64,000 nucleotides of DNA, from the sequence record PQ464595.1; one strand, 5' to 3'. The notes beneath the pieces were generated by a model, which worked only from the letters and a program-made list of their open reading frames with translations, made no database searches and was not told the DNA's origin. The position numbers and the translations under genes are program-made. Shown piece by piece: positions 4,580 through 52,922 of this stretch; the stretch's first letter is position 1, and every line of letters starts with the position of its first letter.

Positions 4580-4609
4580 TTGTTAAATCTCCATGTTGTT
4601 AACGGGTAC

Positions 4610-4638
4610 ATTATACCAGATAATTTCTACCCGTTTCA
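4610..4638 (-). promoter_or_regulatory. Class A promoter upstream of the clamp gene
   Basis: TGAAAC GGGTAGAAATTATCTGG TATAAT. Confidence 0.8.
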
Positions 4639-4647
4639 TCTTTTTTT

Positions 4648-8606: not shown

Positions 8607-8610
8607 CTAC

Positions 8611-8639
8611 ATTATAGCACAGGAATTTTACCCGTTTCA
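8611..8639 (-). promoter_or_regulatory. Class A promoter for dsbA-pol operon
   Basis: TGAAAC GGGTAAAATTCCTGTGC TATAAT. Confidence 0.8.
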
Positions 8640-9077
8640 GTTATTTTTGAGCTTTTCTTCTAAGCGAGTCTTGAGTTCTTCGAACTCTACTTTCTCAGAA
8701 GCAGTCATTTTTGACTTTAACATTAACAAAAATAGTTTATTCTTAATATCTTCGGCTGTTTCTCTCTTAATAACTTCCGTCAGATAAAATTTTTCACCAT
8801 CATAAGAATACTTGATAGATTCTAAATCTTCAGGTACATCTTCAGGTTGAATGATATGAAGGTTACAATCGTTAGGACTTAATGTAGTAGCATCATAATC
8901 GAATCCGACCACAACATTTCTTTCATTTGTTAGTACTTTTAGTGTATTAGTTTCAGCATGATCGGCGTATTCATACCAATCTTGACCATTTTCATCCATC
9001 CAGTACTGAACGAATCCGTAACCACCTTCTTTATTGTATTTCTTAAACATCTGAAATTGTTCTCCATGTTCCATCAA
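8637..9077 (-). CDS. Tail fibre assembly chaperone (Tfa-like)
   Basis: DENGQDWYE motif; directly downstream of a tail fibre gene. Confidence 0.75.
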   Translation of the reverse strand: MMEHGEQFQMFKKYNKEGGYGFVQYWMDENGQDWYEYADHAETNTLKVLTNERNVVVGFDYDATTLSPNDCNLHIIQPEDVPEDLESIKYSYDGEKFYLTEVIKRETAEDIKNKLFLLMLKSKMTASEKVEFEELKTRLEEKLKNN

Positions 9078-17740: not shown

Positions 17741-19909
17741 TTATACATTTCGAGGTGGTTCAGTGTTCTCTGCAATCTGTCTTAATATAAGAGCAGTTTG
17801 GCTCGCATTTTGATTCTGAGCTTGTATACTATTTAGTATCTCTCCTAAGACCTTACTTGGGTCATCTTTACTAGTTGAAGCGGTTTGTTGCTCATTAACT
17901 GGTGTAGATTGATCTGCTTGTTCGACCTTAACGGGTTTAGTCATTTCAGTTTTTGCGGTTACAGTCTGATTACCTGAATTTGAAGGCTGTGATGCTGCTG
18001 GATTAGCAGGCTTTGAAGTACTTGCGGTTTTTGCTGGTTCAGCAACAGGTTTCTTTTCATCATCCCCATTCCACCAACTCTTAAACTTATTCAAGTATTC
18101 ATTTAGTTTATCATTTAATGAATTATACATATCCATAAATGATCTTTTCGTTTCTTCTTGCCCTGGTGGTGTAGTTTTTCCAATATCAGAGAATGCACCC
18201 TTAATACCATCCCAAACTGATGACGCTGCGTCCTTTATTCCATTAAGTTTGTCTTCAAGACTACTGTTCCACCATCCAGTAATGGAATCCCATAACATAG
18301 TTGGCAAGTTTAGTAGATTATTCATGAAATCTTCAAACGCTTTGGATACTTGAGTATAACTATCACCAAATAAACTGGTAGCCCAACCTTCTAGAAGATT
18401 TTGAAGATACAACATACCATCATTGAATATGTCTGGAATAGCTTTTAATCCATCACGGATTAGTTTAGCTGTGAAATCCCAAGCATTATCACTGTTATCT
18501 GCTAGATTAGTTAAGTAAGAAGCAGCAGATTCTGCCATTTCAGCATAGAAACGGCTAAATGGTTCAGTGAATGTAACACCAATCCAGTTATTGAATCGTT
18601 GAGTCATGTTTTCAAATAATGGTGTTGGATTATTTTTTGGATCATTCAATAATGCTTCTTGTGTCTTTAATTGTTTCAACCAAGCAGCCGCCGCAGTATT
18701 ATTCATTAAGGTTTGATTACCAATTTCCATGTCTAACATGTCTTGGTGCTCTTTAACCCACTGTGTCATTGCTCGACGTGCTTGCTTTTCATCAGTAACA
18801 CCAGCAGCTTGTAGTTGCTGTAACTGATTAGTATACAATTGAGTAAAGTTGTTATTGTATTCATCAGGTAACATATTTTGGAAGTTCTTACTGGACATTA
18901 ATTTCTGTAATGTCTCACCAGATTTACCCATACTCGCATATACGGAGTTAAATGTTTTGTTTACTTGAGCAGCTTTATCGTCACTAAAACCGAATCGTTG
19001 CTTCAATGCTTGTTCTGTTACTTCTGAATCAACTGTGTCTGACATGCTATCAAATGATTTTAATAGTTCGTCAACACTCTTACCTACAGTTTTACTTAGA
19101 TAGGTCATAGTACCGACAAATTTTTCAGTACTTTGAGATTCAGACATACTACGTAAACTTTGTTCACCAGCATACATCTTTTCAAATTTATAGTTCTTTG
19201 CGGTTAAATCTGTTAATTGCTGTTGAGATACACCATAAAGACCCATTTTGTCTTGAGCAAGTTGAACGGTATTTAGTAATTTACCAAAGTGTTCAACACC
19301 ATCGCCATATTGACCTTCCATCGCAGCCAATTCAGTACTGTTACGTTTAACTGCTGCACTGAAATCATTGATACTTAAGAAAGCTGAACCAGCACCTTTA
19401 CGAACGGTTAACATACCATCAGTTAGTGTAAGTCCTGCGGAGTTTAGTTCATTGTACATATTTAACTGTTCATTCATGTACTCATAAACCTGTCCAGCAA
19501 CTTGTACTACTTGTAAGAATGAAGAAGCAACCAGACCTATCGGGCCTGGTAGTTTACCTAATGAATTTTGAAGTACTTTAGCTCCAGCAGTAAATGAACC
19601 TACAGTATTCTGGATAGATCCACTGTTACCTAACATGGTTCTACCAATATTTTGTGCCTCGCCGAATAAATCTTTAAACGCATTCTTGAACGCTGAACCT
19701 GATCCACCAGAACCAGAACCACCGCGACCACCAGATCCATTATCTGAATCATTGTTGCCGCCACCTGAACCGCCTGAACCAGAACCTTTATTAGTGTTCT
19801 TCTTAATATCAAGCAGTACTGTACGCATCGCACTTAAATTATCATTCATAGCTACGCTTTGATCCAACAATTGCTGTTGGATATAGTCGTTGTTGCCAAT
19901 GCCCGCCAT
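17741..19909 (-). CDS. Tape measure / baseplate hub protein (gp29-like, putative)
   Basis: Long helical protein with periodic Trp in the C-terminal half; located between portal and hub genes. Confidence 0.6.
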   Translation of the reverse strand: MAGIGNNDYIQQQLLDQSVAMNDNLSAMRTVLLDIKKNTNKGSGSGGSGGGNNDSDNGSGGRGGSGSGGSGSAFKNAFKDLFGEAQNIGRTMLGNSGSIQNTVGSFTAGAKVLQNSLGKLPGPIGLVASSFLQVVQVAGQVYEYMNEQLNMYNELNSAGLTLTDGMLTVRKGAGSAFLSINDFSAAVKRNSTELAAMEGQYGDGVEHFGKLLNTVQLAQDKMGLYGVSQQQLTDLTAKNYKFEKMYAGEQSLRSMSESQSTEKFVGTMTYLSKTVGKSVDELLKSFDSMSDTVDSEVTEQALKQRFGFSDDKAAQVNKTFNSVYASMGKSGETLQKLMSSKNFQNMLPDEYNNNFTQLYTNQLQQLQAAGVTDEKQARRAMTQWVKEHQDMLDMEIGNQTLMNNTAAAAWLKQLKTQEALLNDPKNNPTPLFENMTQRFNNWIGVTFTEPFSRFYAEMAESAASYLTNLADNSDNAWDFTAKLIRDGLKAIPDIFNDGMLYLQNLLEGWATSLFGDSYTQVSKAFEDFMNNLLNLPTMLWDSITGWWNSSLEDKLNGIKDAASSVWDGIKGAFSDIGKTTPPGQEETKRSFMDMYNSLNDKLNEYLNKFKSWWNGDDEKKPVAEPAKTASTSKPANPAASQPSNSGNQTVTAKTEMTKPVKVEQADQSTPVNEQQTASTSKDDPSKVLGEILNSIQAQNQNASQTALILRQIAENTEPPRNV

Positions 19910-19972: not shown

Positions 19973-20827
19973 ATGAATAAGATGAACCCTTTGTCCAAGT
20001 ATACTAAAGTAGAAGTACTTTACACTAAACTTGTGAGTAATAATGTTATTCCTTACCCAGCAGGTGTATTGAATAATGAAACTGTTGAATGTGGTATTTG
20101 TGCTCGTTCAGCACGTGATGAACTAATGTTCAACAATCCCGACGCATTGATTAACGGTGAAGCAGTAGCAAGTGTTATTGAAAACTGTGTTCCTAATATC
20201 GCAAATGCTAGACAACTTTTTGTACCAGATGTAGAATTACTACTTATTGGTATTAAAATCGCAACAAAAGAAACCTTCTATAACATTGAAGTTGAATGTC
20301 CAGAGTGTGGTCATCATGGTGCGTTTGAACGTGATCTAGAAGCACTACTAGCAAGTGCTGAATTACTGGAAGAACAACCTGAATTGCTACTTGAGGAAAT
20401 TGGTGGTTTACTATTGAAGTTTAAACCTCATACATGGGCTGAACATTCTAAATTCAGTCAGAAGATGTTTATTGAACAAAAGAAAGCTCGTTCTCTGGAA
20501 CAGTTGGAATTGTCTGATGATGAAAAGATGAAGCACTTCAGTGCTATTTTTGAAATTATGACTCAATTGAGTTTTGATATGACAGTCGCTAATATCGACT
20601 ATATTGAAACTGCTGATGGGGATAAAGTTACTGACCGTGAATTTATTGCGGAATGGTTAGGACAACAACCAGCATTTATACTTCGTCAAATTCGTGACAA
20701 AGCTGATGTTATTAACAATACTGGTATCAGTCATGAAATGGATGTGGGATGTTCTGAATGTGGTCATGAATGGACGCTAGAAAATCTACAATTCGATCCT
20801 AGCAGTTTTTTCGTACCAGGCTTCTAA
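19973..20827 (+). CDS. gp26: Baseplate hub assembly protein (gp26-like); start corrected to MNKMNP
   Basis: SD GGAG; RDEL...D.L, DVELLLIGIK, ECPECGH and C-terminal CSECGH motifs. Confidence 0.75.
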   Translation: MNKMNPLSKYTKVEVLYTKLVSNNVIPYPAGVLNNETVECGICARSARDELMFNNPDALINGEAVASVIENCVPNIANARQLFVPDVELLLIGIKIATKETFYNIEVECPECGHHGAFERDLEALLASAELLEEQPELLLEEIGGLLLKFKPHTWAEHSKFSQKMFIEQKKARSLEQLELSDDEKMKHFSAIFEIMTQLSFDMTVANIDYIETADGDKVTDREFIAEWLGQQPAFILRQIRDKADVINNTGISHEMDVGCSECGHEWTLENLQFDPSSFFVPGF

Positions 20828-21024
20828 TGGCTGATGCTCAAGAGACTAAACAAGAAATAGCAGACCTACACTTTAACTGTGAAGAAATAAAGAATGGATT
20901 AATGGAGGTGTCTGTGTACATCTCCAATACGAGCTATGAAATGCTCTTGAATATGCCTGTAACAGATCGTGACCTGATGGTGAAGCAATATAATAAAAAG
21001 GTCAAAAAAGAAAGCAAACAATAA
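20827..21024 (+). CDS. gp51: Baseplate hub assembly catalyst (gp51-like)
   Basis: LLNMPVTDRDLMV motif; translationally coupled to the gp26-like gene. Confidence 0.6.
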   Translation: MADAQETKQEIADLHFNCEEIKNGLMEVSVYISNTSYEMLLNMPVTDRDLMVKQYNKKVKKESKQ

Positions 21025-21029
21025 AAATT

Positions 21030-21054
21030 AACCAGCCTTAGTGCTGGTTTTTTT
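21030..21054 (+). terminator. Intrinsic terminator
   Basis: AACCAGC-CTTAGT-GCTGGTT-TTTTT. Confidence 0.85.
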
Positions 21055-21234
21055 GTGTCTGAAATTCTTGTACTATTTGAGATTTGCCATACTTCGTATG
21101 TCAAAGAATTTTCGTTGTTCTGTACTCTCTACGCTCGTACTGATCAACTCAATTCAGTTCTATTAGATACGTTTAACACGATTTATACTGACGAGATTTG
21201 GGGAGTTTATCATCCCCCGCTGGGGGAAGGATAT

Positions 21235-21712
21235 AAAAAAAGTACTAATTAAAGTACTCAATTCTGACGATGATAGTCGTCGTTTAATCGCATCGTAAAT
21301 TTCTATCTTTCAATAGAACGTAAGCGGGTTGTTCTGTTTCTCACTATTACGGTCTTATACAACGGTCGAGGGCTTACCTCACTCAGTACTAAGTCTATGC
21401 AATCAAACTCAGTACCTATTCTTCTGGAATTTTAGACGGATCAATATTGTATAAAATATGACCGCAAAATTCTTCTTCAGAAAAATTCCCTTAGCTATTT
21501 GGTAGGGGGCGATTCCTATATATCTATCGAGGAAGTTCTATCAGCTTAGTGAACTTCTTTATAGTGCCGTATTGCCGTGGGTGGTACAAACTATGCCATC
21601 TCCTAACGGGTGTCTTCTGCACTTCGAACTGCTTGAACTTCTCATTGTGCCAATTACTTTTCATCGGCGACTGTTTATTTGTCTACGCTAACGCATAGCC
21701 AAGCAGGGTTGT
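21235..21712 (-). ncRNA. Candidate large structured non-coding RNA (about 480 nt; may extend to about 21030)
   Basis: Class A promoter upstream; no credible ORF; three hairpins need G.U pairs on the minus strand only; ends in hairpin plus U7. Confidence 0.55.
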
Positions 21713-21718
21713 CCTATC

Positions 21719-21747
21719 ATTATACCAGATTTTTTTAGTTCGTTCCA
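21719..21747 (-). promoter_or_regulatory. Class A promoter firing into the gene-free interval
   Basis: TGGAAC GAACTAAAAAAATCTGG TATAAT. Confidence 0.8.
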
Positions 21748-21756
21748 CGATATTTC

Positions 21757-21762
21757 TAAATA
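21757..21762 (+). promoter_or_regulatory. Late-type promoter (CTAAATA)
   Basis: TAAATA core upstream of 21791. Confidence 0.55.
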
Positions 21763-21790
21763 CTGTAGAAGAACTTTTTGAGGAACTATA

Positions 21791-22273
21791 ATGAAAAGGG
21801 AAAGGTTAAAAAATTCTATGGAAGCTGCCAAATACAGGCAGGAATTACTTAAAAAACAAAAAGGTCTAGATCCTATTACTAAAGAGAAGGTAACTGATCC
21901 AGTACTTGACCATAATCATAAAGGTGAACAAGAGTGTAGAGCTGTTTTAGATAGAACAGTAAACTCATTTGAAGGTAAAGTACAAAATGCTTATGATAGA
22001 TACATAAAGCATTTGACTGATAAGAATCTACCAACTATTTTAAGAAATCTAGCAGATTATTACGAACAAGATACATCTGAAACTAAAATACATCATACCG
22101 CACTTACTATTGATGTTAAAAAGTTTAAAGCATTACCAGCAGCACAACAATGTTCAATTCTTGAATCATTTGAAGTTGTACCTGAATCTAATAGTGCTAA
22201 AAGAGCTAATCAAGCTCGTAAATTAATTAAAAGTGGTCAATTAGATATGACACAAATAAAAAAAGGAGCCTAG
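21791..22273 (+). CDS. gp49: Recombination endonuclease VII-like (gp49 family, His-Me finger), lacking the Zn-binding cysteine pairs
   Basis: QKGLDPIT...VLDHNH....CRAVLDRTVNSFEG matches the EndoVII DHDH...R.LL...N..EG core. Confidence 0.7.
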   Translation: MKRERLKNSMEAAKYRQELLKKQKGLDPITKEKVTDPVLDHNHKGEQECRAVLDRTVNSFEGKVQNAYDRYIKHLTDKNLPTILRNLADYYEQDTSETKIHHTALTIDVKKFKALPAAQQCSILESFEVVPESNSAKRANQARKLIKSGQLDMTQIKKGA

Positions 22274-22285
22274 TGGCTCCTTTTT
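22258..22285. terminator. Bidirectional terminator
   Basis: A-tract, GGAGCC-TAGT-GGCTCC, T-tract, between convergent genes. Confidence 0.9.
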
Positions 22286-22287
22286 GT

Positions 22288-24441
22288 TTATAGGTCTAAT
22301 ACATCACAAAATTCGATAGTACTGAAACTATCTTCTTTCACAACTCGTAAGATTGAGTTAGCACGTCCAATCAATTCTTCACGGTGTGATACCACAAAGA
22401 TGTTTTTACCACGTACAGCACTCAAATCTTGGAGCATATGCCATGAACTCTCAATACCACCAGTATCTAAACCATTATCTAGTAGTTCATCCACCAGCAA
22501 TAGGTTAATACCCTGGAATAAAGACTCGTATGTATCACGGAACGCAAGGTTCAACGCAATAATAACACGAGTACGCTCACCTCTGGACAATTGTTTGAAG
22601 TCATATGACTGACCATTCAAATCAATATCCACACTTAGATCATTTAGGAACTCTACTGTATGTAATGAACCTGATTTCTCAATCCAGTACTGAAGTCTAT
22701 TGTTCAAGAATGAGATATTCTGGTCAATAATACGACGACGCACGAATGAGTCCTTGTTCATTAGTAGTTTTGCCAAATAATCCTGATGATCAGCAAGTTT
22801 GACTAATTTATTGTACTCGTCATAGTCAACATGTTGAAGTGAGTTCGTTTGTAACGTCTCAATCTGTTCAAAGAATGGGTTCTGTGAGGATTGTTCACGT
22901 TCTAGTGAAGAAACCAACGTATCAAATGAACGTTGAAGGTCTTTCACTTCGTTAGTACTGAATGTTTCAGTGTATTCTTTGATTTCAGTACTTTCTAACT
23001 CCGCAAAGAGTGTCATAAGTTCTTCATCATAGATATTCACGTCTTCTTCCGTACTTTTCTTCTTCAGTTCTTCTAGTTTATGCTCATGAAGCTTAGCTTC
23101 AGAGAGTGAAGGGTAGAATGTAACTGGTTTCGCTGGCATATCGAACAATTCAATGCTTTCAACTGCTGCCGTTAATGTATTCATCTCATGCCAAGCAGAT
23201 TCATAGCTGCTTTGTAGTTCAGTCAGATTTTCTTCTGCTGTTTTCTTCATTGTTTCATGATTATGATTGCCTTGAATCGTATTTTCACACATTGGACACT
23301 TGTTGTCAACCAAAGATGCTAAATGTTTCTCTGCTTTAGCAATATTGTTACTGATTAAGGTAACTTTAGAGGTAGCAGCATTCAGTTCTTGTGTTTTAAA
23401 GCGTTTGGTGTTATTCAACTCTTTCAACATCTGGTCTAGAGTATTCCACGTTTCCAATTCATCATGTAAAGCGAGTTCGGCAGCAATATCAAACTTAGAT
23501 AGTTCATCAATGCTTTGTAGTACTGTAGCTTTCTTCTGTATTAGTGATTCTGAGTATTCCTCATGCTTCACTGCTACCTGAGCTAAGCGATTTTCCAGTA
23601 CGGTACGTGCATTGTTGTGTTTAATTGCTTCTTCCATCTTTGATGCTAGATCAAATAGAGATGTAAAGTCAATATCTTCGTAATCTGATAGCTGTTGAAC
23701 TAGAGATTCGATAGTACTTGTCTTCTTTTGTTCAAATTCATTCGCACGAAGTTGTAAAGATTCAATACTTTGAAGAATACGCTTGTTTGAAGCAGTAACA
23801 GTCTCAATTTTGAACTTCTCTTGATCTGCTTGGTTCTTCGTTTCACGATACATGTCTTTCAGAAGGTTAGCTTTCTCTGTAAGTTGAGTAATACAAAGGA
23901 GTTCTTCGATCATTTCACGTTGCTTTTGCTGTGATAGAGACAGGAATGGCTCTACGTTAGCATTCATCACAACAATATGTTCAAATAGAAGTTGGGAAAT
24001 ACCTAGAATCTCATTCAAGTCTTCTTGAGTATCTTTCTTCTCTCCCCTTGATTCATCAATTACTTCATTATCCTCACTTAGAGTGAGGAAAGTAAAATAA
24101 GTGGGACTACGCCCACGCTCAACACGATATTCAACACCATTTTTCTCGAAGTCGATAATGACTTCACAGTTTTTAGCATTAATCTTGTTTACCAAGTTCG
24201 GAATCTTAATATCGTTACCGATACTCTTACCGTATAAGCCAAAAACAATACCCTGAATAATGGCAGACTTACCTACACCATTTCTACGACCCGCATTATC
24301 ATCTCCGACAGATGCATCGTTGTTTTGACCAAGTACTAACGCAAGGTCAGTACTGTCAAGCTCCAATACTTGTGGAGCATTACCAAAAGAAAAGAAGTTA
24401 CGCATCGTAATGCGTTTAATATTAAGCATCCCTGCCTCCAA
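22288..24441 (-). CDS. gp46: Recombination nuclease ATPase subunit (gp46/SbcC/Rad50-like)
   Basis: Walker A NGVGKS, coiled coil with CPMC hook, LSRGE signature, LLVDE Walker B, H-loop VSH. Confidence 0.95.
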   Translation of the reverse strand: MEAGMLNIKRITMRNFFSFGNAPQVLELDSTDLALVLGQNNDASVGDDNAGRRNGVGKSAIIQGIVFGLYGKSIGNDIKIPNLVNKINAKNCEVIIDFEKNGVEYRVERGRSPTYFTFLTLSEDNEVIDESRGEKKDTQEDLNEILGISQLLFEHIVVMNANVEPFLSLSQQKQREMIEELLCITQLTEKANLLKDMYRETKNQADQEKFKIETVTASNKRILQSIESLQLRANEFEQKKTSTIESLVQQLSDYEDIDFTSLFDLASKMEEAIKHNNARTVLENRLAQVAVKHEEYSESLIQKKATVLQSIDELSKFDIAAELALHDELETWNTLDQMLKELNNTKRFKTQELNAATSKVTLISNNIAKAEKHLASLVDNKCPMCENTIQGNHNHETMKKTAEENLTELQSSYESAWHEMNTLTAAVESIELFDMPAKPVTFYPSLSEAKLHEHKLEELKKKSTEEDVNIYDEELMTLFAELESTEIKEYTETFSTNEVKDLQRSFDTLVSSLEREQSSQNPFFEQIETLQTNSLQHVDYDEYNKLVKLADHQDYLAKLLMNKDSFVRRRIIDQNISFLNNRLQYWIEKSGSLHTVEFLNDLSVDIDLNGQSYDFKQLSRGERTRVIIALNLAFRDTYESLFQGINLLLVDELLDNGLDTGGIESSWHMLQDLSAVRGKNIFVVSHREELIGRANSILRVVKEDSFSTIEFCDVLDL

Positions 24442-26320: not shown

Positions 26321-26367
26321 AAAAATCTCCATGTTTTTATATAAAACGATCCTTGTTTTACAGCTAC

Positions 26368-26396
26368 ATTATACCACATTTTTAATTTTCGTTCCA
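26368..26396 (-). promoter_or_regulatory. Class A promoter for gp55-47-46
   Basis: TGGAAC GAAAATTAAAAATGTGG TATAAT. Confidence 0.8.
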
Positions 26397-26401
26397 CATA
26401 A

Positions 26402-26407
26402 TAAATA
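26402..26407 (+). promoter_or_regulatory. Late-type promoter of the baseplate operon
   Basis: AATAAATA upstream of 26436. Confidence 0.7.
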
Positions 26408-29880: not shown

Positions 29881-32579
29881 TGGCATCTCAACAACCTAAT
29901 GGTTCAGGTACTAGTAATAGTATGGCGTATGCTAAGAATCAGGCCGCTCGTTTCAATCCACAGTTCGTACAACTTGCTACGGTTATGGATAACAGAGATC
30001 CTGCCAAAACTGGTAAACTAAAAGTTTGGGTACAGAACTCACAATCAGATTCTGATTCTAAAGGTTCATGGTTAACAGCATCATATCTATCACCATTTGC
30101 TGGGAGAACTCCTGGTACTCCTGGTGCTGAATCTTATTCACAATTTCCTAAAGGTTACGGCTTTTGGGCTGTACCACCAGATGTAGGAACTACTGTTGCG
30201 ATATTCTTTGCTAACGGTAACATTCATGATTGCTGGTGGTTCGCATGTGGTTATGAAGACCGCATGAACACAATGGTTCCTGGTAGTGCTACACAAACAC
30301 TACCGAACAGTGGTTATGACATGGCTGTACCTATTACTGACTATGACCGTAACACACTACAAACACAAATGGATCAGAAATATGTCAACGTACCGTTGGT
30401 AGCTGGTCTAACAAAACAAAACTTGTTATATGATGAACAAAAAGGTGCGGCGAACCGTTCCAGTACTCGTCAAACTACTAGTACTGTTTATGGTATGTCA
30501 TCACCTCGTGGTAACAGCTTTATCATTGATGATGGTTACACCGATGCTGAATTGACAGCACCTAATTGGGATGATGATCCTGATTCATATCAAAATACAC
30601 AATTGTCAAATCCAGTGAACGATACAACTATCGGTCAACGTAAAAACGAAGGTATTGTACTACGTACACGTAGTGGTGCTCAGTTCTTACTTTCAGAAGA
30701 CCAAGGAAATGTATTTTTGATTAACCGTGATGGTACAGCACGATTTGAAATGACTCCTGATGGACAAATTACTGTTCACTCAGACAAGAGTATTACTATT
30801 CGTACCGATGAAGATTTCAACCTTACTGTCGCACGAGATATGAACGTTGAAGTTGGTGGGAACTATAACATGAAGGTTCAAGGTGCTACTAAGTTAGATC
30901 TAGTAGGAACCTTAGATGCTAAAGTGGGTGGTCAAGTTGTCATTAATACTGGTGCTGATTTACGTTTAGTAGCAGCAGCAAGTATTCGTGTTCAAAGTGG
31001 TTCCAGTACTAACATCACTTCTGGTGAGAACACCGCAATTAAAACTGGTTCTACTTTTGATGTTACGGCTCCTACAGCAGTTAACTTAAGCGGTGGTGGC
31101 ACGAACTTTACTATTGCTGGTACAGTTGACAGTAGTTCACAAATTAATGCTCCAGACTTTGTTTCTCCATCAGTTGGTTTAAATAGTCACATTCACTTAC
31201 ACGCAGCATTCTCTGACGCAAGTAATCACAGTAATGAAATGGCAGCACCTGTTCAGGGTGGTGGTGGAAACAACGCTAAAGCAGCAGCAGAACCGCAGCC
31301 AGCTAACGATGTAGCACCAGTAACGCCGACAGTACAGCAACAAGAGAACGTACAGCATATTAACAGTACGAGCGAGGTTGGTCAAGTACTAACGCAAGAT
31401 TTAGTGGTTTCAGATGGCGGTGAGGATAACACAACAGTTGAATCATACACTACTACCTATGAAGGTTTACAACTATTCATGCCATGTACCGGAACCATTC
31501 GTGAATTCGGATATTGGGGTAAAGGTGTTCCAACGCAAAGTGGAAGTACTACAAATCGTAATGGTTGGATTATTCAAGCCAAAGGCGATGTAGTTGCTCC
31601 AGAGGGTGGTTTAGTTACTAAGATGGGTAATGGTGGTATTATTATTACACACCCAATTGGTTATAAGAGTATTTTCTATGATATTGATGTAACTGTAACA
31701 AACAAAGATACGGTAACTAAAGGTCAGAAGATTGGTACAGCTAATGGTGTATTTGAATTTGAAATTCGTCTTGCTTCCGCAAACATCTACGGATGGAGTG
31801 GTACAGTTGACCCAGGATTATTCTACAGTACTGTAACTGCTAAGGGAGCAGATTGTGCGAATAAGAGTTTAACCGTTGGTAAACCTTCTAACCCTAATCC
31901 TAAACCTGCTGCTTCTTATTCAGAGAACAGTACAGATTTGGTTGTTATTACTAGCGTAGGAAGTATTGGTTCAGGATATTCACAACGTGGTTCTCTACAT
32001 GTTCCAAGACGTACCAGTACTAAAAAACGAAATTCTAACACCTCAGCTAATGTTCCAGCAGAAGATTTGTCAAATATTGATAAAACCGCACAGGACTGGA
32101 AAGTATCACCATCTGATAGTAAATTACTTGAAGAAGTAAAAGAATTTGAAGGTACAATTCAATATCAAACAGCAGTTGGATATTATCGTAACGGTAGATT
32201 CTGGATCTATAAAGATAGTCTAGGTTATCCAACAATTGGTTACGGTCATTTAATCACTGCTGCTGACAACTTCGGTGGTGGTATTGATGAAGCTCAAGCA
32301 GATGCACTTTTACAGAAGGACTTAGCCCGTACTGTGCGTGATGCTCAATCACTTTATGCTCAGTATAATATGAAAACCCCATATATTTGTCAAATAGTTT
32401 TAGTAGAAATGTGTTTCCAAATGGGTAAAGGTAAAGTAGCTAAGTTTAAAAATACATTACAAGCTATGGCGAACGGTGATTATAAAGCGGCTGCTGCTGG
32501 TATTAGAAACTCAGCTTGGTATAGACAAACAACTCGTCGTGCTGAAATTATGGCTCGTCGTGTAGAGTCTTGTCAATAA
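29880..32579 (+). CDS. gp5: Central spike (gp5-like): OB-fold, beta-helix, HxH apex, M23-like domain, C-terminal GH24 lysozyme
   Basis: VMDNRDP.K.GKLKVW, PPDVGTTV.IFF; SHIHLH; FEG..Y.D.LGYPTIGYGH. Confidence 0.85.
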   Translation: MASQQPNGSGTSNSMAYAKNQAARFNPQFVQLATVMDNRDPAKTGKLKVWVQNSQSDSDSKGSWLTASYLSPFAGRTPGTPGAESYSQFPKGYGFWAVPPDVGTTVAIFFANGNIHDCWWFACGYEDRMNTMVPGSATQTLPNSGYDMAVPITDYDRNTLQTQMDQKYVNVPLVAGLTKQNLLYDEQKGAANRSSTRQTTSTVYGMSSPRGNSFIIDDGYTDAELTAPNWDDDPDSYQNTQLSNPVNDTTIGQRKNEGIVLRTRSGAQFLLSEDQGNVFLINRDGTARFEMTPDGQITVHSDKSITIRTDEDFNLTVARDMNVEVGGNYNMKVQGATKLDLVGTLDAKVGGQVVINTGADLRLVAAASIRVQSGSSTNITSGENTAIKTGSTFDVTAPTAVNLSGGGTNFTIAGTVDSSSQINAPDFVSPSVGLNSHIHLHAAFSDASNHSNEMAAPVQGGGGNNAKAAAEPQPANDVAPVTPTVQQQENVQHINSTSEVGQVLTQDLVVSDGGEDNTTVESYTTTYEGLQLFMPCTGTIREFGYWGKGVPTQSGSTTNRNGWIIQAKGDVVAPEGGLVTKMGNGGIIITHPIGYKSIFYDIDVTVTNKDTVTKGQKIGTANGVFEFEIRLASANIYGWSGTVDPGLFYSTVTAKGADCANKSLTVGKPSNPNPKPAASYSENSTDLVVITSVGSIGSGYSQRGSLHVPRRTSTKKRNSNTSANVPAEDLSNIDKTAQDWKVSPSDSKLLEEVKEFEGTIQYQTAVGYYRNGRFWIYKDSLGYPTIGYGHLITAADNFGGGIDEAQADALLQKDLARTVRDAQSLYAQYNMKTPYICQIVLVEMCFQMGKGKVAKFKNTLQAMANGDYKAAAAGIRNSAWYRQTTRRAEIMARRVESCQ

Positions 32580-32610: not shown

Positions 32611-33099
32611 ATGAGTAATTGGGTATTAACAAGTTCAGATTCTGGTCTTTTAAATGATATTAAAAATTTTGAAGGTACAATTGCGTATCAAACAAAAGTT
32701 GGATATTACAAGGATGGTAAATTCTGGACTTATAAAGATAGCTTAGGCTATCCAACAATTGGTTATGGTCATTTGATTTTGACAGGTGAGAACTTTAAAC
32801 AAGGTCTTAATGAAAGTCAAGCTAATGATCTATTGGCTAAAGATCTCGCATCTAAAGTTGCTGACGCTAAATCATTGTATGATCAATATGGCATGAAGGG
32901 TGGAATTGCTTTACAAAAAGTACTAACTCAGATGGTATTCCAAATGGGTAAACCTAGAGTATCGCAATTCAAAAATGCTCTTACCGCTATGGGTAAAGGT
33001 GATTATAAATTAGCTGCTAAAGAAATGCGTAATTCTAATTGGTACAAACAAACTACATCACGTGCTGAAAAACTAGCTCGTATTGTAGAATCTCTATAA
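32611..33099 (+). CDS. GH24 (T4-type) lysozyme, paralog of the gp5 C-terminal domain
   Basis: E-D-T triad (FEG...YKDSLGYPTIGYGH), FQMG, NS.WY.QT..RA; own late promoter at 32577-32582. Confidence 0.92.
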   Translation: MSNWVLTSSDSGLLNDIKNFEGTIAYQTKVGYYKDGKFWTYKDSLGYPTIGYGHLILTGENFKQGLNESQANDLLAKDLASKVADAKSLYDQYGMKGGIALQKVLTQMVFQMGKPRVSQFKNALTAMGKGDYKLAAKEMRNSNWYKQTTSRAEKLARIVESL

Positions 33100-46100: not shown

Positions 46101-47142
46101 TGGTACTGTTCGTCTTGTTCAAGATAACGACTTTGTGGTTGGTGAAAAAGTAATGGTGTTTACACCTGAAGCTTCTGACTATGATGTTCAAATGTCTGAT
46201 GGTACTTGGAATACAGTACTACCTGTTGCGAACATCAAAACTGGTACAAGACCTAGAATTTACACAATCAGTTCTGTAAGTAATGATACAATTCGCTTAG
46301 GTGGATTTACAACTTCCAGTACATATGATAGTGAATCTACTACTCTTATGAACCCAGGTCGTCCAACTGCTATTAATATTGTTCGAATCACCTCTTTCAA
46401 CGATGCGTCGTTTGTAAGTGGTAGCATTGCGAAGTACAGTACTGACCGTTCTTACCAAATTAACATTCTTGATTATGACTTGTTCTATGACAGAATGCTT
46501 AAGAGTGGAGCGTATACTGATACTTACAGTACTGATGATTACGATGATTGGTACATTTCTAATGAAATTGTTGAGGTGGATGGAGTTGAAGTTGACCACG
46601 GATACTATCTACCAATTTACGGTAAAGGTGTTCTAAGCGAACTAGTACGTACTAAGATGGATGATAGTCTACAGATATTCGTTTACGAATACTCAGGCAT
46701 CAACCCTGTTAAGAGTGGCGACACTTGGACTTACAGCGGTACATTAGTTGATAACGTTTATATCAGTGACAGCGACGCAGCATTGGTAGTTGCGATTTCG
46801 GATTCAGTACAACATACTGGATACGTAGCTACCCCAACAAATGTTGAAAGTACTTCTATCACTAACGGTATTCTAACAAGCACAAACTCTGGCGAAGCAG
46901 ATTTGGTCGCAGTTAATAACGAAATTGTGTTACTACGCAACAACAATAATATGTTGAGAGCAGTATACGGTACAGTTGAAAACAATTATGAGACAGGAAC
47001 AACATATACTAAGTTAGGTGTTATTCTTGGGAAAGAGGAAGATTTGGAAGTGTATGCTAACCATTATCCTCAAATACCTTTGAGTACATTTAGTAATGGT
47101 TATGTAGTGAGTGGAGCAGTAATTGGACAATTACTACAATAA
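37123..47142 (+). CDS. Giant baseplate wedge protein (gp7-like, putative), about 3340 aa
   Basis: Follows gp6; single long ORF; YFEEVKPYRTKIR motif; SD GGAG before MANEF. Confidence 0.7.
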   Translation: MANEFKFQASKVAEAVNQKLFIKRLPEWMQGLEQIQMFCDDIIQQWFNPADEEIVDGYIGDRGSPAAAGKIFLNELDLQRQDYQFSPAYVSRNSDTSVRSLQFYPDLVGYLEHYGALTENQARLLSGKFYSWTPPINPNKLQNFSSYLWDTENEYGISPDYIVMERGALNGNTWSLQNFWYTIGQTLPDGTVVTEQMAQGTRFRRAQAPIIEFNKNIELMNYGTRYRGDVDYLSDSIKPEDIVQKNVGNNVRIDGFVLKAGDRILFTSIGNAGENNRIYKVYIKQMADGTRVYGLVLDEDEETTARPTGEPLLGDVVLVRSGNVYGNTAVYWNGNEWTEAQAKPGVNSFPLFQLYDKNGIKLDNSTAYPSSTFTGSSLFGLKINYNYGMDKIYQEHVELSEYNYYIFENFLQTVRYTYSKAGALTEIPGLYFYNVIGEDVSGDLVRNLHSDWVRNPEESKQTVRQVPEVTKSSMYRVFNTVSEMNLFKSPVENMYAYVVENDKTYKYYQPSNSTFMKWNAISDVAIQSDLYQTTYELAQKIDPANTDETIEVFFNGTKTFDYTTTLTTDGLVDSITFNSSTSIVEDSIIEIVTYSPTKVPDLDLGSYTIPINLQNNPYNDFVDYIHQGEYTPHFLDIIGKNITNGSVNDLNNYELRLEAGLVDNSVGTKIIQNETSLLPLMLHSANENLDLFSAIIFTQYEYFRFKNKFNTQMMKMYTSDPASFMAESASNIVDLIFSAINVGKDNTFPFALDNVGSNTTTNKTFIPPTPQFLGILKPYTPEKATYVHVGSTIGCYNIDHMGVISKAYRVINGVDLMDDVIYELENRIFSSIDNTFKAIDFVPAMDSDFLKPTPYFESTAYNSDEYNSLELRGYVNFIATQGIDNSTHSYDQSNWMTWNYTGTTYVVNGQPTDIPARGSWRAIYTDMFGTYRPATHPWEMFGFAQRPDWFNQEYEPTKVRLGTATTEYVYVYPAYVTDENGDLVPSGLWDTTSGQGDASTGTILHGSRAGQYDQYKRFGTQPFELVSTGTFASDGEEIFELNLIAPEVLGLVSGALAHVSEPWVYGDMGEMEFTYMNTVMYAYDKVMALLRAKPGQFANYFYDTKGSTIQEITSDGYQFLYGESNKRLNFNSTAIVHGENNQRILGYQTWVSDYLTYQNKNVTTNYGDILRSSYINVGHRIGGYTKQDQLTFSSDSFGLVSQENQHIGLVKSSSFRDEALSAVKIQWTGSGFSISGYDLVGAKLNYKLPNKTGRRVSVTVGKRSVVHYNEYLEQYGSYEYGTLLKTFQEVYTFLCGYGEYLEDRGWIFEDVDTDGVTQDWSVIGKDFISWSATNPAVGEFISVSPSTKNAKFGTAFGSVQSVTQFNGGVWSLLDDTNTGIRPFEIDTSRIGNVFSVRVEDDIDKRMALIRVSVVSYEHAVIFDDKTIFGNDIYMPKYGVIHEMLKMYGYVTGSWNGRLEAPGFIILEAGTMPDFEKLVDDFRSYYDTDHPVDDVTLRNLARHLIGFQTRDYISQMITSDTSQIDFYKGFIRDKGTNQVFERVLRVSKSYNTDNYKALQEWAFKIGEYGNIYGKKHLQFQLINNEFAQEPQMFTFDSLATTDSTENNIVYYGTQGVDSRWITRPNGTFAFPTRTGKSERIHLPDIGPVTLDEVSYTTRDFTTAYADRLSFITNTDTTPTSVWVFRDMDNNWNIYELENTGITLSSITPIGEDSYTGNHCTLQLSAAHGMEDGDYFFFVDESEYMPDLLKAETQYFTTGSDPTSFVIPLNVTNTISFADNNPVLYRYVNRFSTADAKTAYITQKYSYEAPESTLFVRPTTYNDETNVTELYMNVYDPINGVIPGSIMTDITYVSPVDPAKYNSEDETVQAWGSERVGLVWWNTTNAFFMDYTRPIYDEDGNVDEEATNSYKRYNWGKLLPNSEINVLEWVASPYPPYEWAKYCERQAKLNKDNTAWIPSGEAIEDFFSVFQEYDESTNAYKTVYYFWVKNAIYVPKVKNRNKPCNELSRTIQNPSLLNAPWFAPISTDSFIISGLQQEITDDKSILSITYQNDATEVVKHEQYQLCKEGMDYNFNPVIWDSMWNSLLSQETLPNGTVLELNYPTNDNGILPGQTWFRDVIEARRTFVDSANAIYKTINVTTDSVTMADVFNVKTVEENPNLISFKVLNFNNELVINPTTAAFVENDAVLVSSNGTLPSPLDSTTVYFVHFDENNYIRLMNSPSTGGTAVYITLENRGEGQHKMIKQADYIESLGTSLDMTQYWSLADWYSIGYDENTTYTDEISIDVANTKNYQEGDVIRILDADGVWTLYVKTLSRQVVIWQAIARQNSTVALNNQLYNGYEQYNADGSLSNVEINVRKALALIKNSFNTTQSRLVFDMVKYVHTEQTVVAWVFKTSYIYIVGLEQSLQQNSSTDNLISQIVEYFEEVKPYRTKIRSQIEQKTSNTDEMTGISNDLDPNGYVFINGAWVKTQSDIWDHEYAQYNSTTGKWEIVGSLPSDFTSPNRRFQESYEMLVYDNFQCTPDADLADALTLEAVNNSYMSNADDLLSAGNHYKLQRYAFTYPVIDDAAIERNVFSGISSIYTNMDLTLTLEEAIKAQLAEYKDDVELSAQFESDLQRVYNSVISAEPTVTTATQYGQYNTLANRRRLYTQLNDSTISQEMNCPFKGRVLSDNLNTRLPFGYSGSNGETYGYILYSRDLYDKFVSLVLEANPTFSTDEINNYLVYEYGLYPWMYDIENTDATSGELNGKNYLDTLYVLTAMLNTYNPDEVDTFEIARQILTTPTIDMYCMVMIPRKLAYVKNLNTDEYLSVPMDTSLDGFMQDALIANNDVIAMAEINLNDLPLDINNPLYDEIQDVLTTVNGAQYVNDANAFDSFGLESQTKNIAYYASGTVNATQDPTFVNISEINPLGLDSAQLRFTVNGYGYDTSGNTQLKSVGNFQIEGHVLLNPYNTKEAIVSIPRYNEAMSYMQRNLISRNEIRYSYKVQDIINTTGTVRLVQDNDFVVGEKVMVFTPEASDYDVQMSDGTWNTVLPVANIKTGTRPRIYTISSVSNDTIRLGGFTTSSTYDSESTTLMNPGRPTAINIVRITSFNDASFVSGSIAKYSTDRSYQINILDYDLFYDRMLKSGAYTDTYSTDDYDDWYISNEIVEVDGVEVDHGYYLPIYGKGVLSELVRTKMDDSLQIFVYEYSGINPVKSGDTWTYSGTLVDNVYISDSDAALVVAISDSVQHTGYVATPTNVESTSITNGILTSTNSGEADLVAVNNEIVLLRNNNNMLRAVYGTVENNYETGTTYTKLGVILGKEEDLEVYANHYPQIPLSTFSNGYVVSGAVIGQLLQ

Positions 47143-47143
47143 T

Positions 47144-47171
47144 AAAAAAGGGAGCCATTGGCTCCCTTTTT
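47144..47171. terminator. Bidirectional terminator
   Basis: A-tract, GGGAGCC-ATT-GGCTCCC, T-tract. Confidence 0.9.
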
Positions 47172-47175
47172 GTTT

Positions 47176-52427: not shown

Positions 52428-52895
52428 ATGACTAACGAAGCAGTGGGAGCTATATTTTTATCAAAACGTACAGGACGTATGATGCTTAACTTACGTTCCG
52501 AAACCGTTACGTACTCAAATAATTGGGGCTTCGTTGGTGGTAAGATAGAACGTGGAGAATCAGCTATCGAAGCTTTGTATAGAGAGATTGCTGAAGAATT
52601 GGGGGATTCTGTACCCCCAATCGAAGATATAATTCCCTTTGATGTTTTCTGTACTAAGAACGAGAAGTTCAAGTACTATTCATTTATTGTAGTTGTACAG
52701 GAAGAATTCATTCCTGAACTAAATGATGAAAGTGCTGGATACTCTTGGGTTAAAATAGGAAACTGGCCTAAGCCACTTCATCCAGGAGCTAAAAGTACTT
52801 TATACAATGTTAACATTGTTGAAGATATGAATGCTTTATGGGAATCAATAAAAAATGGCAAACCATTTAAAAACAGTTTGCCATATCAAATATAA
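52428..52895 (+). CDS. Nudix hydrolase
   Basis: Nudix box GGKIERGESAIEALYREIAEELG. Confidence 0.95.
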   Translation: MTNEAVGAIFLSKRTGRMMLNLRSETVTYSNNWGFVGGKIERGESAIEALYREIAEELGDSVPPIEDIIPFDVFCTKNEKFKYYSFIVVVQEEFIPELNDESAGYSWVKIGNWPKPLHPGAKSTLYNVNIVEDMNALWESIKNGKPFKNSLPYQI

Positions 52896-52922
52896 AAAGG
52901 AGGCGTATGCCTCCTTTTTTTT
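52894..52922. terminator. Bidirectional terminator
   Basis: AAAAAGGAGGC-GTAT-GCCTCCTTTTT. Confidence 0.9.

Follow-up and report, generated by a model that had tools for sequence, protein, structure and literature searches.

The question raised by a long gene-free gap in the genome of Erwinia phage Kaldavass, a 366-kb RaK2-like jumbo phage, is whether it holds the gene for a large structured RNA and what such an RNA may do. The window, a stretch of 64,000 nucleotides from record PQ464595.1, contains a single interval of at least 250 nt without an ORF of at least 70 aa (20828-21790), in agreement with the first-pass annotation, which had described the gap as the only long one in the window. The six hairpins, promoter and terminator that it had placed there were re-checked on the sequence and are all found at those coordinates on the minus strand. 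The earlier observation of RNA-like features in the gap is confirmed, and it understated them. The MFE z-score of the gap sequence is -3.65 for the minus strand and -2.35 for the plus strand; the minus-strand value indicates that the fold of this element, copy A, exceeds that expected by chance. The best explanation, to which a probability of about 0.6 is assigned, is that minus-strand positions 21235-21747 are the gene for a ~480-nt structured non-coding RNA of type A, which acts through its fold, mainly in trans. That the gene belongs to a structured RNA gene family with five ancient paralogues (A-E) in RaK2-like jumbo phages is nearly certain, and the odds that the predicted RNA acts through its fold and mainly in trans are about even.

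Paralogues and coding potential

When the whole Kaldavass genome is searched with the family profile, exactly five paralogous elements emerge, all on the minus strand, each within its own gene-free gap of 0.7-0.9 kb and 56-85 kb apart. The match of the family profile HMM to copy A spans 21176-21717 on the minus strand (E=2e-119). Blastn gave 245 matching places in 61 phage records and 284 in 71, and the genomes listed carry four to five copies each. The family is present in at least four named genera (Mimasvirus, Eneladusvirus, Asteriusvirus and Alcyoneusvirus) and in unclassified Salmonella, Klebsiella and Erwinia phages, and RaK2 contains a divergent copy (E=4e-35). Among the first 120 pattern matches listed for bacterial contigs one is real; it comes from a Buttiauxella MAG, on a contig of 68.8 kb that is probably phage; a looser pattern applied to IMG/VR added two more copies, of known types, among the matches listed. 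As traced by these sequence searches, the family is one of jumbo phages of enterobacteria (the RaK2/GAP32/121Q group) with up to five ancient copies per genome. In a tree of the copies, five clades (types A-E) each hold one copy per genome; therefore, the paralogy is ancient. Outside the window, the phage encodes an 'RNA-binding protein' (CDS0476) with DUF2828, DUF7788 and a weak VWA match; as a candidate protein partner of the RNA it is a lead only.

The annotation of PQ464595 places three plus-strand 'hypothetical proteins' of 41-65 aa (XPP60255-57) in the gap. The corresponding ORFs exist, at 21055-21252, 21329-21454 and 21549-21698; however, no reading frame is conserved among the copies, in which homologous stretches lie in different frames with frame shifts between them. 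Stop-free stretches are at most 86 aa long, and all six frames are equally similar. Substitutions are compensatory within helices and have no codon pattern, the promoter faces in the opposite direction, and the gaps are unannotated in the curated records of CBB, GAP32, BF, 121Q and RaK2. The coding potential of the element was rejected for lack of a conserved frame, and small protein genes are a scarcely credible reading of the gap.

A covariance-model search against Rfam 15 (4227 families) gives no match, 6S RNA included, at gathering thresholds in the whole 64-kb window. At E<=10, the only matches within 20900-21900 are sub-threshold and of sRNA type, and they miss the folded domain and cover the terminator, promoter and gene ends on either side of it; at E<=1, ten other family loci give only two matches, both at chance level. 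ARAGORN finds no tRNA or tmRNA gene in 20800-22000. These negative results from Rfam and ARAGORN bear out the remark that the element has no hallmark of tmRNA, RNase P or group I/II introns. A description of the family was not found in the searchable literature, and the same searches yielded no RNA-seq data set of a RaK2-like phage.

Structure model of the minus-strand RNA

Alignment A1 contains 47 non-redundant copies with less than 95% identity, and RNA position p of copy A corresponds to window coordinate 21722-p. Comparison of the copies shows a predicted minus-strand RNA with at least 12 conserved helices and three pseudoknots (Table 1); the scored model has 16 helices with the three pseudoknots. 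The hairpins reported in the first-pass annotation are those now named P1a (21683-21698), P4 (21532-21557), P6 (21386-21415), P7 (21368-21380), P10 (21301-21318) and P12 with its U7 run (21235-21259). Strong covariation across the 47 homologues shows P4, P6, P7 and P10 to be real, whereas the three pseudoknots and the long-range helices P1, P3 and P8 are newly found.

Table 1 Features of copy A and its surroundings, in window coordinates.
Feature	Coordinates	Strand	Remarks
Promoter TGGAAC-N17-TATAAT	21719-21747	-	-35-like TGGAAC, 21747-21742; -10 TATAAT, 21724-21719
TG of the 17-nt promoter spacer	21727-21726	-	At -15/-14
Predicted RNA, copy A	21235-21713	-	~479 nt; start (~21712-21715) deduced from the -10 box, end from the terminator
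5' domain	21626-21706	-	P1, 21699-21706 with 21629-21636, around P1a and P1b
P1a hairpin	21683-21698	-	Inside P1
P1b hairpin	21649-21668	-	Inside P1; conserved loop GAAAAGUA
Pseudoknot PK1	21639-21641 with 21626-21628	-	Brackets 3' strand of P1
P3	21563-21623 (21619-21623 with 21563-21567)	-	Encloses P3a and P3b
P3a	21606-21609 with 21575-21578	-	
P3b hairpin	21580-21603	-	Forms in 42/47 copies
P4 hairpin	21532-21557	-	7/7 pairs changed on both sides; at most 4 pair types per position
Pseudoknot PK2	21542-21546 (P4 loop) with 21493-21497	-	Target just 5' of invariant UAAGGGA
P5	21503-21518	-	Between P4 and 3' strand of PK2
A/U-rich stem module	21429-21459	-	Conserved 19-nt loop RUACAAUAUAGAUCCGUCY
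P6 hairpin, 12 bp	21385-21416	-	11/12 pairs changed on both sides
Pseudoknot PK3	21397-21402 (P6 loop) with 21288-21293	-	3' strand directly adjoins P8
P7 hairpin	21367-21381	-	GAGG/CCUC in copy A; 92% paired; 3/5 pairs changed on both sides
P8	21347-21351 with 21294-21298	-	Encloses P9 and P10
P9	21320-21344	-	Conserved 15-nt loop AAACAGAACAACCCG
P10	21301-21318	-	GAAA loop; 4/5 pairs changed on both sides
P11 hairpin GACGA-CUAUCA-UCGUC	21266-21281	-	Conserved as GACUAYCAYCGUCAG; register ambiguous, left unscored
P12 intrinsic terminator AGUACU-UUAAUU-AGUACU, then U7	21235-21258	-	93% paired; 4/6 pairs changed on both sides
Conserved 3' segment past terminator	21188-21226	-	P13, G-run and CAAAUCUCGUCAG
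P13 CCCCC-AGC-GGGGG	21214-21226	-	Invariant G-run (~21214-21218) plus AU
CAAAUCUCGUCAG block	21188-21200	-	
Bidirectional terminator AACCAGC-loop-GCTGGTT	21030-21049		T-runs on both sides; from terminator scan

The helices were defined by a covariation scan and inspection and were then scored. In A1, 94.0% of the cells are paired, compared with 74.4% in shuffled alignments and 36-45% with slid partners. The helices covary, with changes on both sides in 63 of 84 pairs; compensatory cells number 656 against 185+-12 after shuffling, and the covariation score is 0.468, as opposed to 0.06-0.10 with partners displaced by 1-3 columns. On every measure, all 500 shuffles fall short of the observed value, but these shuffle statistics overstate independence because the structure was derived and scored on one family of related sequences. 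The slid-partner controls and the RaK2 copy, which was left out of model building, lessen this concern and do not abolish it. Of 75 pairs, 64 persist in the RaK2 copy, and in 28 of these both partners have changed; P6 retains 12/12 pairs and PK3 6/6. RNAalifold recovered the structure only in part from raw MAFFT alignments. Since MAFFT misaligned P1a, P1b and P3b, these were checked by folding each copy singly: a P1a hairpin of at least 4 bp with unrelated stem sequences forms in 45 of the 47 copies, and 19 distinct stem pairs occur in P1b.

The individual elements differ in how they vary. Seven of the eight pairs of P1 have changes on both sides, and PK1 is paired in 47/47 copies (100%), in the variants UA, AU and CG. 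The P3 region contains the invariant strands ACCCGUUAG and CACGGCAAUGCGGC; P3 and P3a are 100% paired, and four of the five P3 pairs are changed on both sides. The same holds for four of the five pairs of PK2 despite the imperfect MAFFT alignment there, and matching variants of loop and target are visible in the alignment. Among the 38 copies with the P6 hairpin, PK3 is paired without exception (100%; 5/6 pairs changed on both sides), and P8 and P9 are 100% paired in 47/47 copies, each with such changes in four of five pairs. Types A, B and E carry the module with the 19-nt loop in the interval from P5 to P6 (alignment columns 385-420), and types C and D carry it atop P10 (columns 553-585); this swapping between two sites fits peripheral elements of compactly folded RNAs. 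About one quarter of the nucleotides are invariant or nearly invariant across paralogues and genera. Many of the invariant blocks inspected are in loops or junctions: ACCCGUUAG, CACGGCAAUGCGGC, UAAGGGA, CGACCGUUG, which directly follows P7, and the loops of P9 and P1b. Past the terminator, G504-U510 and CAAAUCUCGUCAG are invariant or nearly so in 47/47 copies. Only the C/U strand of P13 varies; therefore, P13 is conserved as sequence and not simply as pairing.

Within the helices, G.U and U.G occur 279 times and A.C and C.A 65 times, and pairing is 94.0% on the minus strand compared with 88.0% on the plus strand. Because G.U is far above A.C, the minus strand is the folded strand, as had been proposed. 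A folded single-stranded DNA of this strand would likewise tolerate covariation and G.T wobble, and the elements could be DNA-level repeats, that is, minus-strand ssDNA structures, protein-binding sites, or recombination or packaging signals, with transcription being incidental. The GACGA/TCGTC palindrome, the presence of TCGTCAG twice and the even spacing of the copies would suit such repeats. However, the promoter of every copy is aimed to transcribe exactly the folded strand, three of the five types have intrinsic terminators, and the conservation extends over ~540 nt, beyond short binding sites. We know of no ssDNA signals with pseudoknotted folds of ~480 nt, and a DNA-level element is very improbable. 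Compensatory changes above controls and strand-specific wobble, the generic marks of a structured non-coding RNA, are both present. Together with the conserved promoter, the lack of a conserved frame and the lack of an Rfam match, they uphold the proposal of an undescribed large phage non-coding RNA on the minus strand. The large pseudoknotted RNA family is real and previously undescribed.

Transcription, downstream genes and replication

The promoter of copy A has a family-wide consensus, TGRRAC-N17-TATAAT, located ~45 nt upstream of P1 in each family member examined. The claim that the candidate RNA has its own promoter holds beyond copy A, as the motif is kept in every copy and aimed into the folded strand. 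There are 33 occurrences of the motif in the Kaldavass genome, on the minus strand without exception, and the same promoter class is found in front of tRNA and replication genes. A 'divergent RpoD-like' promoter consisting of TGAAACG plus TATA has been described in phage CBB, and the copy-A promoter agrees with it (PMC5259590). It is the conserved promoter and the terminators that argue for a transcript from the family loci. The terminator attributed to the RNA is present in copy A, where P12 precedes U7, but it is not a family-wide feature: P12 occurs in only ~20 of 47 copies, those of types A and C, type D has a differently placed terminator hairpin, and types B and E have none. Similarly, there is a terminator where the unit had been proposed to end; however, the conserved sequence runs ~50 nt further. 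The terminator stem of type D shares GUCAG with P11, and therefore both structures would be mutually exclusive.

This exclusivity resembles an expression platform, and the RNA might act on transcription in cis, for instance as a giant leader, a riboswitch-like sensor or an HK022 put-like processive antiterminator, in which the nascent RNA modifies its own polymerase or decides read-through into downstream genes. Two observations are in line with such an element: four of the five copies are embedded in long runs of minus-strand genes that share their direction, and types B and E lack a terminator. By contrast, copy A has no downstream gene to control: its nearest genes on the 3' side are convergent, and the bidirectional terminator in between ends the plus-strand gene that converges on it (20827-21024) and would also stop transcripts that read through from the RNA gene. 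Copy A thus lacks the promoter-proximal position to co-directional genes that a leader or antiterminator would have. The co-directional genes that follow copies B-E apparently have a separate sigma-70-like promoter (TTGACW with UP-like GAAAATTC) and may therefore be expressed independently of read-through. No leader of this kind near ~480 nt and with three pseudoknots is known to us, and regulation of transcription in cis is an improbable role for the family.

The genomic arrangement of the copies raises the possibility of cis-acting RNA-primed replication origins, the alternative put forward in the first-pass annotation by analogy with T4 middle-promoter origins. A transcript from the middle-type promoter would form a persistent R-loop immediately past the folded domain, where the invariant G-run is located, and prime the leading strand, while the fold would bring in replisome proteins or else hold the primer in place or shield it. 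The spacing of the five copies in the 366-kb genome is consistent with such a role, as the chance that the smallest gap between five random points on a circle is this large is ~0.003, calculated as (1-5x)^4 with x=0.153. Their cyclic order and similar spacing are shared by fHe-Yen9-04, GAP32 and two metagenomic genomes, and the paralogues are ancient, syntenic and unhomogenised. The promoter class is that preceding replication genes (genome motif survey; PMC5259590), and in all copies the transcript would run into the candidate zone. The invariant run of G5-6 on the non-template strand is directly 3' of the fold and conserved beyond the needs of pairing, and the phage encodes a T4-type replisome, RNase H and UvsX/UvsY. 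However, conserved spacing is conserved synteny and constitutes one observation only. Priming alone leaves the three pseudoknots and the paralogue-invariant loops unexplained, and R-loop origins known to us need no elaborate fold. Types A, C and D have a strong terminator between the fold and the G-run, and therefore most of their transcripts would stop short of the G-run. GC skew tracks gene orientation without an inflection at the five loci, which is uninformative for T4-like replication. RNA-primed origins are a possible, although unlikely, function of the copies, and the same is true of RNA-defined origins in which the template-held pseudoknotted domain and the G-run would nucleate the R-loop and recruit the T4-type replisome.

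The structured RNA acting mainly in trans is the preferred reading. The gene would be transcribed leftward in the early-middle phase by host RNA polymerase, with a phage factor probably redirecting the enzyme, and in types A, C and D a discrete RNA would be released by the intrinsic terminator. The RNA may work via its compact fold, with the invariant unpaired nucleotides forming one surface, for binding or activity, that all five copies present to the same partner; this partner could be a small ligand, a protein or another RNA molecule. Redundancy among the copies would be avoided by their type-specific peripheral hairpins. Several observations count against this reading. Types B and E lack a terminator, and a simple discrete RNA leaves unexplained the invariant G-run and CAAAUCUCGUCAG past the terminator in types A, C and D. 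No partner protein gene adjoins the copies, and each of the five loci has different neighbouring genes. Five syntenic, evenly spaced and non-homogenised copies fit a role in cis at least as well as one in trans.

Relation to known RNAs and significance

The comparison with ROOL and GOLLD made in the first-pass annotation is fair as regards size, and there is no homology. ROOL and GOLLD are likewise phage-borne RNAs of the ~500-800 nt class; they are rich in helices and pseudoknots, their unpaired nucleotides are highly conserved, and no ORF is associated with them. As far as is known, they usually occur as single copies, in Firmicutes or in phages of Firmicutes. By contrast, the RNA described here has four to five ancient, syntenic and evenly spaced paralogues in Enterobacterales jumbo phages, each with its own phage promoter, and it shares no sequence or structure homology with ROOL and GOLLD and no Rfam 15 match to them even at E<=10. 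Cryo-EM work on ROOL and GOLLD has been presented in a preprint (bioRxiv 10.1101/2024.12.08.627333).

ColE1 RNA II and the T4 origins oriF and oriG resemble the jumbo-phage RNA in having a promoter-driven transcript of ~0.5 kb with a G-rich stretch near the 3' part, a replication-linked promoter class and several loci per genome. T4 has about five origins, and the ColE1 RNA II is ~550 nt long and structure-dependent. These systems form simple stem-loops or need no particular fold, and their origins show no sequence paralogy, whereas the jumbo-phage RNA has a pseudoknotted fold, invariant loops and, in three of the five types, a terminator before the G-run. RNase P RNA and tmRNA are comparable in size and pseudoknot content. 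ACAGAACAACCCGCUUA resembles CR-V and GAAAAGUA resembles CR-I of RNase P, which we take to be a superficial likeness and a lead only. Identity with RNase P was rejected, as the CR-I/CR-V-like strings are without Rfam support and the topology does not fit: ACAGAACAACCCG forms the loop of the local hairpin P9 and is not one strand of a long-range P4 helix. Unlike tmRNA, the RNA has no tRNA-like end and no match in Rfam or ARAGORN. The pRNA of phage phi29 is also a phage-encoded structured RNA acting as RNA, in an oligomeric ring on the packaging motor; it is ~120-174 nt long, single-copy and without a pseudoknotted core, and the jumbo-phage RNA gives no Rfam match to it. The ncRNA004 of PA5oct, a jumbo phage distantly related to the RaK2 group, is a 'putative lncRNA' of 619 nt detected by RNA-seq (PMC7318152) and is similarly a transcribed, ORF-free region of ~0.6 kb. 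It was rejected as a distant homologue because nhmmer with the family profile finds nothing in it and the invariant blocks are absent.

To our knowledge, very few classes of large (>400 nt), highly structured RNAs have been recognised in bacteria and phages, and each so far has been a ribozyme, the core of an RNP or an unexpected self-assembling architecture, as in ROOL and GOLLD. We know of no precedent for a large non-coding RNA arranged as five non-homogenised, evenly spaced syntenic paralogues. The family is new in itself and in its genomic arrangement, while the category of large phage non-coding RNAs was already known. Its comparative support is unusually strong and includes three pseudoknots, and the copies have been kept for as long as the phage genera have diverged. 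The results correct the annotation of several GenBank records, which place spurious short ORFs across these RNA genes. If the loci were RNA-defined origins, they would represent a class of origin specified by a conserved RNA tertiary fold and not by DNA sequence; a new ribozyme of large size, or a hetero-oligomeric RNA machine of five specialised paralogues, is equally admissible. Members of the family are present in the cultivable phages 121Q and PBECO4 of E. coli, GAP32 of Cronobacter and RaK2 of Klebsiella, and therefore its role in jumbo phages is directly testable.

Five copies of the element in the Kaldavass genome

The gene-free gap at 21025–21790 is identical (100%, blastn) to positions 207025–207790 of the 366,556-bp record PQ464595, and record coordinates are therefore obtained by adding 186000 to those of the window. 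The record is the genome of Erwinia phage Kaldavass, a RaK2-like jumbo phage with a T4 core. The gap is the only long gene-free stretch in the window, as claimed in the first-pass annotation: the single stretch of at least 250 nucleotides without an ORF of at least 70 amino acids is 20828–21790. The complete Kaldavass genome contains exactly five copies of the element, A–E, in one common orientation. Each copy occupies a separate gene-free gap of 690–930 nucleotides, and minus-strand genes surround four of the five. The GenBank annotation of PQ464595 places three short ORFs labelled as hypothetical proteins in the gap of copy A, and such ORFs span all five RNA genes, not copy A alone; the homologous gaps are unannotated in the curated records of the related phages CBB, GAP32, BF, 121Q and RaK2. 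The short ORFs are almost certainly false gene calls.

Copies of the element and other features (window coordinates unless marked as record or as L002–L012, other pieces of the Kaldavass genome; copies located by local blastn and profile HMM, short ORFs from GenBank)
Feature	Coordinates	Strand
Copy A (the window's copy)	record 207.0–207.8 kb	minus
Copy B	record 44.3–45.0 kb	
Copy C	record 122.2–123.0 kb	
Copy D	record 288.6–289.6 kb	
Copy E	record 354.6–355.3 kb	
Left neighbours of gap: baseplate-hub gene, 65-aa ORF		plus
Right neighbour of gap: endonuclease VII		plus
Next on right: SbcC/SbcD-like genes, late sigma factor		minus
Short ORFs over copy A	21055–21252, 21329–21454, 21549–21698	plus
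Short ORFs over other copies	L002 44307–44887; L004 22241–22907; L010 38690–39526; L012 4612–5270	
Promoters of the RNA-copy class (examples)	498–541, 4607–4647, 8608–8648, 26364–26407	
Four like bidirectional terminators	1899–1942, 22250–22293, 47136–47179, 52884–52927	
Terminator separating endonuclease VII from SbcC-like gene	22260–22285	
Direct repeat, 134 nt	32139–32272, 32662–32795	
722-aa virion structural protein	17741–19909	minus
Dense short direct repeats within one long ORF	57600–61400	plus
504-aa annotated RNA-binding protein (outside window)	L010 28662–30176 (record 278662–280176)	

A blastn search of 50,697 phage records with copy A identified 245 matching places in 61 records, three to five per genome; the 121Q copy as query matched 284 places in 71 records. 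A pattern scan of IMG/VR with a profile filter yielded 62 matches among the loci included. One of the 120 pattern matches listed from bacterial genomes is a true member, and the contig bearing it is probably phage. A divergent copy in Klebsiella phage RaK2, which blastn barely detects, is matched by nhmmer at E = 4e-35; it lies in a 739-nt unannotated gap adjoining the dam methyltransferase gene, the neighbourhood of type E. The maximum-likelihood tree of 48 copies, which covers Mimasvirus, Eneladusvirus, several metagenomic genomes and more distant relatives, contains five clades, A–E, each with one copy per genome. Therefore, the paralogues are ancient and have not been homogenised. Record OP292654, 'Xanthomonas phage XbC2', has five copies and is 95% identical to Kaldavass over the gap, which is surprising because the assigned hosts belong to different bacterial orders.

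A conserved pseudoknotted RNA fold

The promoter and six hairpins (P1a, P4, P6, P7, P10 and the terminator P12) recognized from the sequence alone are all found where they had been placed. Folding of the minus strand of 21234–21713 has a z-score of −3.65 relative to shuffles, none of 100 being as good; that of the plus strand is −2.35. In an alignment of the five paralogues, invariant blocks lie between stems whose two sides change in concert. Helices were located by a covariation scan and inspection, and the resulting model has 16 helices, 84 pairs and three pseudoknots (PK1–PK3). For scoring, 47 copies with less than 95% identity were aligned by tool, and the model was compared with shuffles and with a slid control whose partners were displaced by 1–3 columns. 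Standard pairs fill 94.0% of cells (shuffled 74.4 ± 0.4%, slid 36–45%), compensatory cells number 656 (185 ± 12, 71–116), and the covariation score is 0.468 (0.167, 0.06–0.10). Covariation among relatives, which the first-pass annotation had proposed as a check, is seen in 63 of the 84 pairs changing on both sides (48.6 ± 2.1, 23–35). None of 500 shuffles equals the observed value in any of the four measures.

Helices P3, P3a, P8, P9, PK1 and PK3 are 100% paired wherever present, and single positions show as many as four pair types. MAFFT misaligned the variable hairpins P1a, P1b and P3b, and these were checked sequence by sequence: P1a forms in 45 of 47 copies from unrelated stem sequences, P1b combines a conserved GAAAA(N)GUA loop with 19 different stem pairs, and P3b is present in 42 of 47 copies. 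Of the 75 pairs scored in the RaK2 copy, which was held out from model building, 64 are kept, and in 28 of these both partners differ from those of copy A (kept in full: P6 12/12, PK3 6/6; P7, P8 and P9 5/5 each). G·U outnumbers A·C by 279 to 65 in scored pairs, and several positions are G·U in 25–36 sequences and A·C in none. Therefore, the folded strand is the minus strand of the window, as G·U pairs had indicated at first pass.

In copy A (the RNA position is 21722 minus that in the window), the 5′ domain is formed by P1, which encloses P1a and P1b and whose 3′ strand is clamped by PK1. P3 and P3a enclose P3b. PK2 connects the P4 loop with the stretch directly 5′ of the invariant UAAGGGA, with P5 in between; an A/U-stem module with a 19-nt conserved loop comes next. 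PK3 joins the P6 loop to the strand immediately 3′ of P8, so that P8 and PK3 can stack. P7 is followed by P8, inside which lie P9, with a conserved loop of 15 nt, and P10, with a GAAA loop; the RNA ends with P11 and P12. Types A, B and E carry the A/U-stem module between P5 and P6, types C and D atop P10; position-swapping is the behaviour of peripheral elements in compact RNAs. The scoring alignment has 88 invariant columns and another 53 with at least 90% conservation; in the blocks inspected, loops and junctions hold many of them.

The element carries a conserved pseudoknotted RNA fold with its own phage promoter, and the probability that it is a gene of a structured-RNA family is estimated at 0.9–0.95. 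Function at the level of DNA alone is very unlikely. Stop-free stretches reach at most 86 amino acids, similarity between copies extends to all six frames, and homologous stretches occupy differing frames. This frame-shifting homology and the absence of a conserved frame speak against a protein-coding gene, and coding is the least probable reading of all.

The whole window has no match in Rfam 15 at gathering thresholds. At E ≤ 10, the gap has only sub-threshold matches, none in the folded domain and all falling on the terminator, promoter and gene ends that flank it, and at E ≤ 1 nothing relevant was found in ten other family loci; no known family fits. ARAGORN detected no tRNA or tmRNA, and RNase P RNA was rejected because CR-I- and CR-V-like strings sit in the wrong structural context. 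The only ncRNAs reported in this phage lineage are four RNA-seq regions of PA5oct (PMC7318152); the longest, ncRNA004, was compared and has no similarity. A search of about 8.4 million papers and preprints turned up no account of the RNA. The family is real, better supported than the first-pass annotation could know, and absent from Rfam and from the literature searched, in line with the earlier term 'undescribed'.

Promoters, 3′ ends and replication

Every copy is preceded at a fixed distance by TG(A/G)(A/G)AC-N17-TATAAT with TG at −15/−14, copy C having a TGGATC variant. All 33 exact copies of the pattern in Kaldavass (spacer N16–18, extended −10 box) are on the minus strand, and the sites precede the tRNA region, replication genes and four of the five RNA copies. 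The motif matches the 'divergent RpoD-like promoter' (TGAAACG plus TATA) reported mostly upstream of DNA-synthesis genes in CBB and GAP32 (PMC5259590). Several two-copy 'repeats' of the window appear to be minus-strand promoters read on the plus strand.

The promoter claimed for the element is present in every copy; the claimed terminator is present in types A and C, as a stand-alone hairpin followed by a U-run; D has a different terminator, whose stem shares the 3′ strand of P11, and B and E have none. All types have a conserved 3′ segment consisting of a CCCC-loop-GGGGGG hairpin with an invariant G-run, followed by CAAAUCUCGUCAG. Farther 3′ are a late-promoter-like TATAAAT and a sigma-70-like TTGACW preceded by GAAAATTC; both are putative promoters. 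The four-copy bidirectional terminator of the window is AAAAAGGAGCC-loop-GGCTCCTTTTT, flanked by A/T runs on both sides.

The spacing of the copies, 78, 85, 82, 66 and 56 kb (a smallest gap this large has p of about 0.003, our calculation), the promoter class tied to replication genes and the invariant G-run after the fold would suit a cis-acting RNA-primed replication origin. The kept order and similar spacing in other genomes also do so, as one observation, because synteny is reflected. However, priming gives no reason for the elaborate fold, and in three types the terminator lies ahead of the G-run; an origin is the strongest rival, but a doubtful one. GC skew has no inflection at the five loci, which for T4-like replication points neither way. 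A transcriptional leader or antiterminator is less likely still, and fails for copy A because no gene lies downstream.

Proteins of the genome and possible function of the RNA

The ORF with dense repeats (43–104-nt units of type GGTNNNNNNACTGTTGGTGGT) looks like that of a structural protein, highly repetitive and resembling a fibre or adhesin. The 722-aa virion protein has a long Gly/Ser/Asn low-complexity tract near its N-terminus and a C-terminal tail rich in Pro/Ala/Ser/Thr/Gln. The copies of the 134-nt repeat are 78% identical and 523 nucleotides apart. The 504-aa protein matches DUF2828, DUF7788 and, weakly, VWA, an architecture that may be Ro60-like. It could be a candidate partner of the RNA; nothing ties the two together.

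There is about an even chance that the RNA acts through its fold in trans. Were it to work in this way, the five paralogues would share a surface for binding or catalysis, built from the invariant nucleotides left unpaired, and the peripheral stems specific to each type would keep the paralogues from being redundant.
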